A DNA stretch of 63,192 nucleotides, counting the filler, from Hausera hauseri (taxonomy: Eukaryota), in assembly GCA_046269625.1 (NCBI GenBank). It is 10 parts of 10 records of this genome, joined end to end, with 100 filler letters (N's around TTAATTAATTAA, not from the genome) between each part and the next. Parts side by side here need not be neighbours in the genome. Positions count along the whole stretch, not along the records: positions 35,246 to 41,526 come from JBJURY010117653.1; 9 more parts are not named here. The stretch is one strand, 5' to 3'. The notes beneath the pieces were generated by a model. The model had not been told where the DNA came from. It was given only the letters and a program-made list of their open reading frames with translations, and did not search any database. Position numbers and translations under genes: made by a program. Numbering within the stretch: position 1 is the stretch's first letter; each line of letters opens with the position of its first letter. Shown here in pieces: positions 35,246 through 41,526 of this stretch.

Positions 35246-36691
35246 ACTCCTACTAATAATTCCGACCTTCTTCGTCGTTATTTTCTGTCTTCCCTGCCAA
35301 CATCCATTCGAGCTCTACTTACAGTAGTTGATGAGTCTACACCCATTGAAAAACTTGCACTACTAGCGGATAAGAGTTTCGACATTCTTCAATCCAACAG
35401 TTCACAGCCAGTAGCAGCATCGTCCATATCCAAGCCTCCAGAAATACCATCCACCGAGTCACAGGAGCAGACTCCCTCAACCTCGAAAATCCAACAGCAG
35501 TTTTTGAAACCAATGGATGTTCCGTCATATTCTCCAACAGCAAACACGCTCTTGAATGATGTGTCGCCAGCAGTTCCTTATGAACTTTACAAGGACTTTC
35601 TAGACCCAATATCCGAAGCCCTAGACATCATTTACCATTCTATTAATGAAGAACATCTGTCTACTCCCAACAAAACAAGCATCATCGATCAACTAAACTT
35701 TATTCGAAATAAAGTAACAGAAAAAGCGATTCAACACGCAGCATACTTGACCTCATTTAATATTTTGCAGGTCACAATATCGAAGAAACTGGATCATATA
35801 CCATTAACGAAAGAGACAGTATCATCGAGCGCAGTAACAACCGTTCCAGTTCCATCCCCAGTTCCATCTTCACAACCCACCAAGCCGTATGCAGCAATAG
35901 TGAAAGAGTCTGCCTCGGCCCGCCCACCCCAGCAACAGACGTTGATTATAAAATCCACGCTTTCTAAACCTCTAGAAGCGACGAAAAAATGCGTGGAACG
36001 GACTCTTCACAAAGAGCGCTTACTCGTTGAAAGAGTAGATTTCACAAAACAAGGAACAATTCTAGTACACAGCAGTGATCCTGAAATACTAAGACAATTA
36101 GAAACTCATTTAAAATCAGATGTTTCCCAAAAGGATTTACAAATAACACGGAAAGGTCCAGCAACCGGAAAAATTATAGTCTTCAGCGTCCCGAACTATA
36201 CCCCAACGTCTGCCGTCCAAGACGCTATGGTTCACGCGTATCCAGATTACAGCCTGGAAGACGTAAAATTTGTTAAAGCCCCTCCAGGGCGGTTAGATTC
36301 AAAACATGTGGTGCTAGAAGTACCCTTGTCTTTACAACGACTCATCCTCTCAGAGAAAAACCAGGGCCGTCTTCTGGTCGGATTATCCCGTTGCTTAGTG
36401 AAAAGATACCATGTAATTTCACGCTGCTCTCACTGCCAGACAATTGGTCACCCAGCGACTCGTTGTCCCACTCTGGATCAACCCCCAATCTGTGGGAAAT
36501 GCATGTTGACACACTCCACAGACAAATGTGACATTTCCTCAACAAAGTATCAGTGTATTAACTGTACTCTAAGCAACAAAGAATTACAGACAAAATATTC
36601 TGTAAATCATCATACAGGAGACCGCACATGTAGAACATACCAAACAACTTCGAGGGCCTTGCGCCTTTCACTAGAGACAGTAAAAGCTTAA
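35246..36691 (+). CDS. Hybrid ORF1: Gypsy Gag C-terminal capsid segment fused in frame to LINE ORF1 with three zinc knuckles (5' end open at the contig edge)
   Basis: 86 stop-free codons from 35246 (TPTNNSDLLRRYFLSSLPTSIRALLTVVDESTPIEKLALLADKSFDILQSNSSQPVA...) run into ORF 35504..36691, which ends in CSHCQTIGHPATRC, CGKCMLTHSTDKC and CINC..H..C. Confidence 0.85.
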   Translation, partial: TPTNNSDLLRRYFLSSLPTSIRALLTVVDESTPIEKLALLADKSFDILQSNSSQPVAASSISKPPEIPSTESQEQTPSTSKIQQQFLKPMDVPSYSPTANTLLNDVSPAVPYELYKDFLDPISEALDIIYHSINEEHLSTPNKTSIIDQLNFIRNKVTEKAIQHAAYLTSFNILQVTISKKLDHIPLTKETVSSSAVTTVPVPSPVPSSQPTKPYAAIVKESASARPPQQQTLIIKSTLSKPLEATKKCVERTLHKERLLVERVDFTKQGTILVHSSDPEILRQLETHLKSDVSQKDLQITRKGPATGKIIVFSVPNYTPTSAVQDAMVHAYPDYSLEDVKFVKAPPGRLDSKHVVLEVPLSLQRLILSEKNQGRLLVGLSRCLVKRYHVISRCSHCQTIGHPATRCPTLDQPPICGKCMLTHSTDKCDISSTKYQCINCTLSNKELQTKYSVNHHTGDRTCRTYQTTSRALRLSLETVKA

Positions 36692-39600
36692 CATTCTTAT
36701 TAGGACAGTTAAACTTACAAAATAATCGTTCAGCTACATGTGCGGCAATTTCTTATTTTATACGTAAAAATTATTCTTTAGTGCTTCTGCAGGACGTCTA
36801 TCTGTTTCGGGGTCGCCCTTTAAGTTTACCCCTTCATTACCCTATATATTCTTCAACAAACCAAAAAGCCCACATCATAGTTTTAGACCCCAATATAAAG
36901 CATACCATCTCATTAAAAGCAGACAATGTAATTTTCATAAATATAACATTCGACTCAACAATTTGGAGTATTGGAACCCAGTACTCCCCTCCCTCAGGAG
37001 ACCTTTCGGCAGATTTGGCGTCCTGGAGTGGACCTTCTCGTTTAAGCAAGTTTTTGGTTTTTGGTGGTGATTTGAACGCCCATAGTCCCTTGTGGGGCTA
37101 TAATCACGAGGACTCCAGGGGTCGTTCATTGATTCATCATTTTCACAGACAAGGTCTGATCTGTTTGAATGATCCCTCGAGCCCTCCGACGTTCGAATTA
37201 CCCCACATTTTTGGATGGCCTGATGTTACCCTTTGCTCTTTAAATGTGTTTTCCCTCTTCTCTACATGGGAAGTTGATCGGGATCTCAATTTTGCTGATC
37301 ATCGTCTGATAACAGTAACTTTCCAGCAAACAATTACTTTACTTCGAAACGCCGTTTTCGCACAAAAGGAGTACCGTTGACCAAAGTCACAAACGCAATT
37401 CTTTCCGAAATAACCCCTTTACTACCTAAGCTAGCAACTAGCACAACACCTATTGAAGTAGACACTATAATTGAACAATTCGAGGAAAAGATACTTTCCC
37501 AAAGTAAACTTCATTTAAAACAAAAACGACAAAATTATCGTCCACAAGTAAAGTGGTGGTCACCGGCGCTCCGTGCGCAACGAAATAAACTCAGAGCTCT
37601 TTATCGGCGGACTAAATTTGACTCATCTTTAGAAATTCAAACACAATACAGACGTTTCAAAGCGGTCTACAAAAGATCGATACTTGAAGCAAAACGGAGA
37701 TCCTGGCAACAATTTTGTGAAGGAACGACCTCAGCTTTTGGTACGACGCAAAAGTTAGCTTTTGGCAAAAACTTGTCCTCCACAGAACTCCTAGCTCTCG
37801 ATAACTTGCCCCCAACAGAAGTCGTCTCTCGCCCCTTAACTCTAAAGTTTATCATCAACTCAATCTTTGGCACTGAAGGAATTCGTCCTTCTTCACTTCC
37901 CTCTTCTCTACCCTCAGTAGCTCCAACTCATCCACTTACGCATAATGAACTAAAAACTGCTATATTTTCTTTTAAAAAAACAAAAGCCCCAGGTCCAGAT
38001 CAGCTAGATCATATTTTATTACGATCCCTCTATTCCAAAAACCCAGATCTCTTCCATAATCTTTTCTCAAATCTATTCAATTTTAATTACTTTCCAACTT
38101 CCTGGAAAAAAGGGGAGGTCGTTCTTTTTCCTAAAAGGGGAAAGAGTCCAGCATTGGAGAGCTCTTATCGTCCAATAACACTTCTTCCAATTTTAGGCAA
38201 AATTTTAGAAAAAATAATACTAAATCGTATAGAATTTCACATTTTCCAAAACAATTCCTTTCATCAGAACCAATTTGGCTATAGCGATAGGAAGTCTACA
38301 GAATCAGCAATTATCACAGTAATAGACCTAATTCAAAAAGCCCGTGATTCGGCCAATTTTTCTTTAATCGTCTCAATAGACTTCAAAAATGCTTTTGATT
38401 CCCTTCCTTGGCCCCAGACTTTAAAGCTCCTCACTTCTTTAAATCTCCCTCAAGAGCTCTTTAATCTGGTTTCTTCTTTCTTGAAAAATCGTTCAGCGAT
38501 AGTGGATTGGACATCCCCCAAAAATTTAATTTATTTTACAAAAGGTTGTCCCCAAGGTTCTTGTCTGGGACCCTTCCTCTGGAAGCTTCTTTTAAATTCC
38601 TTACTTTCGACATTCACCCTAGTAAATTCAGAATTGATAGCATATGCAGACGACCTGCTTCTGGTGGCGTGGGGATCCACTCAGATCTCTCTGGAGACAA
38701 CAGCTACGAAAGCTCTCCAATTTATCGAAAACTGGGCAATAAATAATAACATCAAAATTTCTACAGAAAAGTGCCAAGCTGTAGTTTTTCCAAGGCACGG
38801 CCCAAGACCTCGAAACCAACCGAAGAAACATGCCTTTCACTGCAATAACATCCACATGAAAAGAAATCCCACATTAACAATCAACAATCAACGCATCCCA
38901 ATTAATCTGGAACTCTTATATCTTGGTGTAACCATTGACAAAAATCTTTCTTGGATACCACATTTACGGCAGAAAAAATCTCAAATTCAATTAATAATCC
39001 AAAACTTATTTAAATTCGCGGCAGTGAACGGTGGTGTTTCCACCACGATACTAAAGATCTGGTACAAAGCCATTCTTGAAAGAGTGGCTCTGTACGCCGC
39101 TGTTAGCTGGTCGTCTTCCCTCTCAAAAAAAGGTTTCGAGCTACTACAATCAATCCAACGGATGTGTCTCATTTTAATATCCAAAGCTTACAGGAAGACT
39201 TCCACTGCCGCGCTGCAAACCCTAACAGGAACTTTGCCAATCGATTTACAACTGAAAAAAGAATCTCTTTTGGCCACAGCGTATCGGTTTCGCAGAGACT
39301 GTCAGCTGGAGGACTTGCGGATTCGAGCTTCTTCTCTCGCAGAGAAACCATCAAAATGGACATTACCCCCTTATTCAAAATTACCTCTTTTGGATCCTTT
39401 ATCCCACCAAGAAAAACATTCCTCCTTAGAAATTTACACAGATGGCTCGAAGCTCCATTTAGGAACGGGAGCGGCCTTTTGTGTCTTCCAAAATAATGAA
39501 TTAATCCATTCAGAGAGTTCAACTCTGGGAGATCGGAATTCGATCTTTCAGGCAGAACTCTTTGCCATTAAACAAGCAACGTCTTGGTTTCACTCTTCTT

Positions 39601-40298
39601 CGTTCGAGTCTGCAACTCTTCTAACGGACAGTCGTTCAAGTTTGGAAATACTGCAAGATATTTACAATAAAAATCCAATAGCCCTAGAAATTTTGCAACT
39701 TATTCAAATTCTTGAGAAACCTCTCCACTTTCGCTGGGTGAAAGCCCATGTAAATGTAAGAGGGAATGAGTTAGCTGACACGCTGGCCAAATCTGCAGCT
39801 TCATCGACGACTCAGAACCGTCAGTGTCTTCCAGTTCCTCCTTCATTTATTAAAAAACTACTAAAAGAAAAAATCGAGCAGATCTGGCAGACCCGATGGT
39901 CCAACCCACAAACAAAGGGACGCTACACCTTCCAGTTCTTCCCTAAAGTCTCAACTGCCCTCACTCTCATACACCGAAATTTGTTTCTATTTTTTACCAA
40001 TCACGGTCCATTTAACGAATACTTATCAAAATTTAATAAAGCACCAAACACATATTGCATTTGTGGAGGAATCTCCAATTCTCAACACTACATCTTTGAT
40101 TGTCCCTTAACTTCACAATACCATATTCGCAAATCCTCTACCATTCCCCTCCCGAATTGGACTTCTCTCTTACTCACTCGACAAGACTTACAATATAAAA
40201 TAATAAATTGCATGAAATACATAGAGGACAATCAGTTAACATTTCAAAGTGTTAATCCTCCTCTTCCCTCTTCTGGCAGAGACTCTGACGGTTTCTGA
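36690..40298 (+). CDS. LINE ORF2 (APE-RT-RNase H-CCHC), R1/LOA-like, with a single frameshift near 37340
   Basis: QLNLQ, GGDLNAHSPLWG, FADHRLI; APGPD, YRPITLL, DFKNAFD, GCPQGSCLGP, YADD; IYTDGSK, QAEL, TDSRS, WVKAH..GNELAD; CICG..H..C. Confidence 0.93.
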
Positions 40299-41199
40299 TG
40301 TACGCAAATTTAATGAAATTACTCAGCTACAATTATATAAAATGGAATTTTCAAAAAAAAAAAAAACTTCAAATTTCCTATGTTTGTTAACATTACAATA
40401 AACGAACTAATTTCACTACTAAGGAAGATATATCACTATATATTCTGTAAAATGTCGAATTAAATATACCAATGTCATTATTTAAGAATCAGTACCTGTA
40501 CAACAACTGAAGCTCATGGGCTTCCTATTGTATCAACCAATGTATTTTTTTAAATTTTTTAATAAATCCATACCGGAAATATATAGCCATAAACCTCACG
40601 GTTGGCTTCCGGTAGGTTGAAATTGAAATTGATTTAATTATTTTTTTAAGGCTGAAACTAGCCTGTACTTTTCTGTAGATACAAAATATTCAACAGATTC
40701 TTTCTTTCCGGAAAAAATCTGAATTCCTGAAACAAAATGTCCATTTACATATAAAATCCAATACAAAATTTCAAAATCTATCAACCATTTTAACGCCGGC
40801 TGTTTGTTTTTAATCTATACCAGTGTCAACATATTTACATTGACCAAATTTCGGCAATCTAAATGTAATATAATTCGTACGCAATCATCAATGTCGGTTA
40901 TGTTTATGCATCCTAGTTTTAGTTTCAATTTTCAAAAAATCGGAATAAACGTTTAACTAATGCCAATTAACAAATTTAGCATATGGTAAATTTAAAATTT
41001 TTTGCAGTGGCGATCATCTGTTTCATGTAATTATTGTCGTATACTTATTCTATAAATTGGAATGCTGTATGAATAGTAGTGTTCATAAATTGCCATATTA
41101 ACCGAGTATAGAAAGTGATGCCGTTGAATGTGTAATATATTTAGTAAAGGAGGGTTTGCTCGACAAAATCGGCGGATCGAAATCCGCACTATCACTTGG

Positions 41200-41526
41200 C
41201 TTATTATCTCTCCTCTCCTTTACGATCCTTGTTCACTCGTTTCAACCATTACACTTCGTCGAATTACTCTACCATCTTCCATATTTTCAGCTCCCACCGA
41301 TGCAGCGAAATTTGTCAAATTATTTGATACGGTCCTTCGAACTGATAAGCATCTTTTCTTTTCTGAGGGTCTACTTTCACGAACACTTTTTGTCCAATTT
41401 CAAAATTTTGTTTCCCTCTCTTCCCCTCGAAATTTTCCATTCAGTTAGCTGCCTCTGTAATATGTCGTGTAATACTTTGTGTCAGTTTGCTATTATCGGT
41501 CTGCCTTGTGACTCCTCCATGCGTTC
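41200..41526 (-). mobile_element. 3' end of a Gypsy integrase with PPT
   Basis: Minus strand NFEIGQKVFVKVDPQKRKDAYQFEGPYQII, followed by the purine tract AAGGAGAGGAGAGA. Confidence 0.7.

Follow-up and report, generated by a model that had tools for sequence, protein, structure and literature searches.

A near-intact I-group LINE next to a truncated LTR-type Gag in the genome of Hausera hauseri: most likely a transposon nest

Non-LTR retrotransposons of the I group that encode a Jockey-like ORF1 protein (ORF1p), such as I, Loa, R1, Nimb, Tad1, Ingi and Outcast (PMC4640811, PMC3905857), are the comparison system for the element described here. RNase H is listed for the I-group clades, R1 included (PMC4640811), while in the Jockey-like class of ORF1p the CCHC knuckles come after one or more RRM domains, and non-LTR elements have been described as lacking Gag homologues (PMC3905857). 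A precedent for one type of open reading frame occurring both in LTR elements and in non-LTR or Penelope-like elements comes from bdelloid rotifers (PMC5408684), where esterase, exonuclease and env-like modules are shared as accessory ORFs of their own within multi-copy families. Two further situations bring a LINE into contact with foreign sequence. In nested or adjacent insertions of a LINE in or beside an LTR retrotransposon, two unrelated pieces abut. In mammalian L1 chimeric retrocopies (U6-L1; PMC4476161) and in L1 5' transduction, a foreign, RNA-derived piece is joined to the LINE 5' end and runs in the same direction.

The locus that we compare with these systems lies in a window of 63,192 nucleotides, filler included, composed of ten parts of ten records of the Hausera hauseri genome (GenBank assembly GCA_046269625.1). 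It occupies contig JBJURY010117653.1 (positions 35246-41526 of the window), which measures only 6.3 kb, begins inside one repeat and finishes inside another; the analysis covered this part of the window. Frame 1 of this contig is free of stops over 481 codons, starting at its edge (35246) and ending with the TAA at 36689-36691, while the two other forward frames contain 4 and 6 stops over 35246-35512. The first ATG of the open frame (residue 90, M90) is at 35513 and is preceded by 89 codons. A previous reading of this DNA from the sequence only had described 86 stop-free codons running into LINE ORF1; the openness of the frame is real, but the count is not, as 86 codons reach the TTG at 35504 and 89 are needed to reach the ATG. 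In our opinion the frame spans two unrelated mobile elements lying side by side, which probably form an ordinary nest, with a LINE placed into or next to an LTR-type gag and accompanied by a loss of target sequence or a rearrangement.

The LINE is near-intact and ordinary, being conventional in all its parts. Its ORF1 (35513-36691, plus strand) encodes a Jockey-like ORF1p of 392 aa, followed by a stop codon, and was assigned on the basis of library relatives, a structural model and fold matches. The AlphaFold2 model of the 481-aa reading has pLDDT values above 90 for residues 230-470 and predicts long helices (about 35582-35794). These are followed by tandem RRM-like domains (about 35936-36406), delimited with the model and Foldseek, in which the fold matches were tandem-RRM proteins (NONO/SFPQ, the UP1 fragment of hnRNP A1, and U2AF65). 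Three CCHC knuckles (36425-36631) complete the protein; they match retroviral nucleocapsid, and their 12 Cys/His positions are invariant in alignment A1. A Pfam search with ORF1 assigned no family.

The ORF2 frame is shifted by -1 relative to ORF1, overlaps its end by 58 nt (36634-36691) and lacks an ATG upstream of the endonuclease core; presumably, it is reached by frameshifting or by coupled termination-reinitiation. Its first part (36634-37344, plus strand) encodes an apurinic-type endonuclease (Exo_endo_phos_2, 4.3e-16; Exo_endo_phos, 1.5e-05) that is 44% identical to residues 1-205 of the library protein P0002. The endonuclease frame follows P0002 to residue 205 and the next frame resumes at residue 207, so that a single frame break, located at about 37344-37347, separates the endonuclease from the reverse transcriptase, as had been noticed earlier. 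The second part of ORF2 (37347-40298, plus strand, with the stop codon at 40296-40298) is 42% identical to P0002 over 980 aa. It contains a reverse transcriptase (about 38130-38933; RVT_1, 6e-39), an RNase H (about 39423-39800, residues 683-808 of the 973-aa reading; RNase_H, 3e-13) and a C-terminal Cys/His tail. Direct reading of the same strand indicates a 3' UTR of 54 nt (40299-40352) and an A-tail of 14 nt (40353-40366).

Three of the features by which I-group membership is judged are present: an apurinic-type endonuclease N-terminal to the reverse transcriptase, in an arrangement colinear with P0002, an RNase H downstream of the reverse transcriptase, and RRM domains followed by CCHC knuckles in ORF1p. 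The endonuclease-reverse transcriptase-RNase H order of ORF2, the ORF1 architecture and the A-tail are common to this LINE and to the I-group LINEs with a Jockey-like ORF1p. It differs from them in that the nearest ORF2 proteins in the databases are only 38-43% identical and in that the leader before its ATG does not exceed 87 nt. The ORF2 search returned 144 relatives, the best of which are unnamed; the named ones are arachnid (spider and pseudoscorpion) proteins, whose R1-type labels are automatic. We also observed that the ORF2 tail at 39950-40110, after the RNase H, carries a Cys/His motif, YCICGG...H....C, which is conserved with P0002 and corresponds to the usual zinc-knuckle-like C-terminal tail of such ORF2 proteins.

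The search of a library of 1.84 billion proteins with the 481-aa reading returned 1589 relatives, whose matches lie mostly over residues 185-475. Among the best 150 of these, hits of the Gag type cover residues 1-85 only, nearly all hits of the ORF1 type cover residues 91 onward, and none combines a Gag part and an ORF1 part in one protein. Two long-span hits were considered as possible fusion proteins and rejected: the N-terminus of P0163 is of low complexity and showed no Gag similarity when tested, and that of P0181 was judged by eye to be of low complexity. In the closest ORF1 relative, P0122 (359 aa), residue 18 pairs with residue 96 of the reading, and the two proteins have in common the stretch SPT....(I/L)(I/L)NDV.P. 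The initial methionine of P0122 would thus correspond to about residue 79 of the reading, and M90 (35513) therefore fits a native start. Relatives of ORF1 measure 359-540 aa, as compared to 392 aa counted from M90, and the others among them carry N-terminal extensions of varying length that are of low complexity and not Gag-like. As judged from these sequence comparisons, the evidence speaks against a need of ORF1 for the Gag leader.

The piece upstream of ORF1 has another origin. The first 60 codons of the contig (35246-35425, plus strand) are 73% identical over 60 aa to P0125 and P0272 in tblastn and 56-65% identical to P0121, P0132 and P0198. Of these proteins, P0125, P0132 and P0198 come from the full library search and P0272 from a cluster look-up, while P0121 was the sole relative returned by a word search limited to this region, its residues 192-251 being 65% identical to residues 1-60 of the reading. 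We assign this piece to an LTR-type retroelement, as a truncated, capsid-like part of its Gag. The left side of the piece is cut by the contig edge, it spans the last three helices of a capsid-like domain, and its own model comprises three helices (residues 5-51, pLDDT about 80). The fragment aligns with residues 323-382 of P0198, that is, with the end of the helical domain of this protein, which occupies residues 223-372 of its AlphaFold model (pLDDT 65-87) and is followed by a long helix (residues 386-416). The best PDB fold matches of this domain found with Foldseek are all retroelement capsids, with the Arc C-terminal domain at the top (prob 0.99, TM 0.55), followed by the EIAV, HIV and MLV capsid proteins and the C-terminal domain of PEG10; the E-values of these matches are weak (0.04-1) and the alignment behind the model has only six rows. 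We regard the Gag-like or capsid-like nature of the fragment as well supported, with a probable capsid fold. This bears out the claim of the sequence-only reading that the contig opens with a Gag homologue, and the Gypsy type named there is a candidate affiliation.

No family was assigned by Pfam to the first 60-90 residues, and a PDB sequence search with the Gag profile gave nothing meaningful. The best curated-family signal for the Gag relatives is the match of P0198 to DUF7041 (E = 0.012), which is below the cut-off, and a literature search on DUF7041 found nothing relevant. In the Gag relatives, the capsid block is followed by a linker of variable sequence, then by a coiled coil and a pair of knuckles of the form CxYHxKF...A..C..GC. 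The coiled coil and the paired knuckles are absent from the whole piece, as indicated by tblastn with five Gag relatives, so that the Gag fragment ends before these parts of its family.

Two observations concern the Gag relatives themselves. Their capsid-like domain is preceded by a degenerate ubiquitin-like leader that terminates in RLLGG or RLCGG. This leader is located at about residues 97-173 of P0198, 640-704 of P0132 and 642-706 of P0272, and in P0198 it is modelled as beta-beta-alpha-beta-beta (pLDDT about 55). The ubiquitin-like leader with an LRGG end mentioned in the sequence-only reading agrees with this finding, which concerns the three relatives; a literature search on ubiquitin-led Gag proteins found nothing relevant. 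The second observation concerns P0121, a metagenome protein from ENA, in which a bacterial DUF5777 outer-membrane barrel (residues 47-170) is followed by a eukaryotic Gag half. Since its N-terminal half is a bacterial barrel, the record is itself chimeric, and this calls for caution with protein records derived from metagenomes.

Between the Gag fragment and the ATG of ORF1 lies a linker of 87 nt (35426-35512, plus strand), which holds the junction of the two elements. Codons 61-89 showed no significant similarity to the Gag relatives (shuffle P 0.05-0.54), and secure Gag homology ends at codon 60. HMMER and BLAST alignments extend to codons 85-86, where IQQQF is set against MQxQF; because shuffling gave non-significant values, we did not retain this extension as evidence. 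The linker is predicted to be disordered (pLDDT 30-40), and the sequence at the join is of low complexity. The stretch 35426-35512 is either a variable Gag linker or a LINE 5' UTR, and is not assignable to one element. It showed no Rfam match and no self-cleaving ribozyme, its predicted RNA structure is neither unusual nor stable (z = +0.75), and no shared repeat or long microhomology was seen at the junction. A 2A-like peptide at the N-terminus of ORF1 was considered and dismissed, as inspection by eye revealed no NPGP motif.

The distance from Gag homology to the ATG of ORF1 is at most 87 nt and perhaps less than 10 nt. This is short for a LINE 5' UTR, so either this copy is truncated just before its ATG or the leader of its family is very short. 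Two unrelated sequences on the same strand have a chance of 1/3 of being joined in frame and, provided that the LINE accounts for all 29 linker codons, a chance of 0.30 of being free of stops over the linker. An open, in-frame join is thus expected in roughly 10-33% of same-strand juxtapositions, and the continuity of the Gag frame into ORF1 is not beyond chance.

On the other side of the LINE, the A-tail is followed by about 820 nt of AT-rich sequence (40367-41189; GC 0.27-0.31) with no recognisable coding sequence in composition and six-frame reading. Searches with the five Gag relatives by tblastn found no continuation of Gag anywhere downstream of the A-tail; a weak alignment of the Gag knuckle region with plus-strand positions 41288-41521 (E = 0.14) was attributed to chance. 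No target-site duplication was found around the LINE. The best shared 8-mer was rejected as such a duplication, as 0.49 matches of this kind are expected by chance and the LINE start would then fall inside the secure Gag homology. The earlier statements that Gag does not resume in the AT-rich non-coding sequence from 40367 onward, and that this does not look like a plain insertion with a target-site duplication, are both upheld. As no duplication marks it, the LINE 5' end is not fixed exactly, and a plain insertion would need to be supplemented by a deletion or rearrangement.

Results of our analysis indicate that the stretch is most likely a transposon nest with no function of its own. A young, nearly full-length I-group LINE would have inserted into or beside one copy of an LTR-type element, its orientation being that of the gag of this element. 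The LINE would use its own ATG at 35513, and the running of the Gag frame into ORF1 would be accidental. The missing duplication and the missing downstream part of Gag may be explained by a target-site deletion, by a later rearrangement (a further insertion, for example, or an exchange among copies of the LINE) or by a wrong assembly join. Counted for this explanation are the conventional organisation of the LINE, the fit of M90 to a native start, the separation of Gag-type and ORF1-type hits, the missing Gag coiled coil and knuckles, the disorder of the junction region and its lack of a clear assignment to either element, and the chance of 0.1-0.33 of an open join. The contig also ends in a decayed integrase-like fragment on the opposite strand of the 3' flank, which gives the locus the appearance of a transposon nest; with nested or adjacent insertions the locus has in common such a decayed fragment on the other strand and two unrelated, abutting retroelement pieces, both of them recognisable and either complete or truncated in the usual manner. 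The locus differs from these in the absence of a duplication and in that the interrupted gag is not resumed after the LINE. Counted against the nest, besides the missing duplication and the leader that is short for a LINE 5' UTR, is the near absence of disabling mutations from both the Gag fragment and the LINE, an observation also compatible with one transcribed unit.

That equal lack of decay is also what would be expected of a one-off chimeric retrocopy without function, an explanation that we consider unlikely, though it is the best of those competing with the nest. It could arise by a template switch in the course of target-primed reverse transcription, if the LINE reverse transcriptase, on arriving at the 5' end of its RNA template, jumped to a gag mRNA. 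It could also arise by 5' transduction, if transcription of a source LINE lodged in a gag began in the upstream element, so that the Gag piece was copied along with the LINE. In either case the Gag piece would belong to the inserted DNA and not to the target. The common orientation of both parts, the location of the join at or just before the LINE 5' end, the absence of Gag after the A-tail and the absence of a duplication around the LINE alone are all consistent with such an origin, which fits the same data as the nest. Template-switch chimeras are documented for mammalian L1 (PMC4476161). Such L1 cases, however, are defined by numerous independent examples and by a duplication that encloses the entire chimera, and the left end of the supposed chimera here lies beyond the contig edge at 35246. 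Moreover, nothing in the piece needs a chimera more than it needs an insertion with a deletion.

A wrong joining of a Gag repeat and a LINE repeat in a short, repeat-rich contig is less likely still. The small size of the piece, the location of both its ends inside repeats and the low complexity of the sequence at the join would favour such an artefact, but the two sides of the junction have no repeat or long microhomology in common.

The sequence-only reading had proposed, as a possibility, an LTR/non-LTR hybrid that gained a capsid domain on ORF1p. In its fullest form this would be a multi-copy LINE lineage in which the capsid part of an LTR-element Gag was captured as an N-terminal extension of ORF1p, with the start codon upstream of the contig edge. 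The resulting protein would have a capsid-linker-RRM-knuckle order, parallel to the capsid-nucleocapsid order, and could package LINE RNA in Gag-like particles. The frame is open over the join, and bdelloid rotifers provide the precedent of ORF sharing between retroelement classes, with the difference that here a capsid is fused to ORF1p at a single locus. Such a hybrid is attractive in principle, since the Gag piece is cut immediately behind the final capsid helix and ORF1p has knuckles of its own. Nevertheless, a functional family of this kind, joining Gag to ORF1, is very improbable and the least favoured of the explanations considered: no start codon for it is visible within the contig, its architecture is absent from the 150 best of the 1589 relatives, ORF1 relatives begin near M90, the open join has a high probability by chance and falls in disordered sequence assignable to neither element, ORF2 of this copy is broken, and non-LTR elements are described as devoid of Gag homologues (PMC3905857). 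The proposal of a gained capsid thus finds no support, and its fallback, an accidental in-frame insertion followed by deletion, is the one favoured by the M90 start, the lack of fusion relatives and the chance of an in-frame join.

Searches for other copies covered viral contigs (one scan) and metagenome contigs (two scans, one of which used the Gag alignment as the query), and gave no match; the host genome is outside these collections. A word search with the 481-aa reading likewise returned no match. As an ordinary nest, the locus is useful mainly because it allows two unnamed families to be annotated, one of I-group LINEs and one of capsid-like Gag proteins. Should the junction prove to be multi-copy and expressed, it would represent a non-LTR element equipped with a genuine capsid module. 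Since non-LTR elements are described as having no Gag homologues (PMC3905857), a capsid-bearing LINE, if true, would bear on the exchange of modules between retroelement classes, and also on whether target-primed elements can form particles.

Several minor observations concern the right end of the contig. The perfect hairpin at 41172-41187 (GCGGA-TCGAAA-TCCGC) recalls the T-arm of a tRNA; ARAGORN found no tRNA in the piece. The decayed integrase-like fragment (41190-41524, minus strand) was delimited by translation and motif reading, contains seven stops and is truncated where the contig ends. Sequence searches of Pfam and PDB with its open pieces gave nothing meaningful. Its translation (FEIGQKVFVKVDPQKRKDAYQFEGPYQII...) contains an F-x-x-G-x-x-V ... 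GPY pattern, which we take to be the putative C-terminal end of an LTR-element integrase. Its orientation is opposite to that of the Gag fragment. On the minus strand, the run of pyrimidines at 41207-41221 reads as purines and may represent a polypurine tract; in that case, the AT-rich sequence at 40367-41190 could be an LTR of the element to which the integrase-like fragment belongs.
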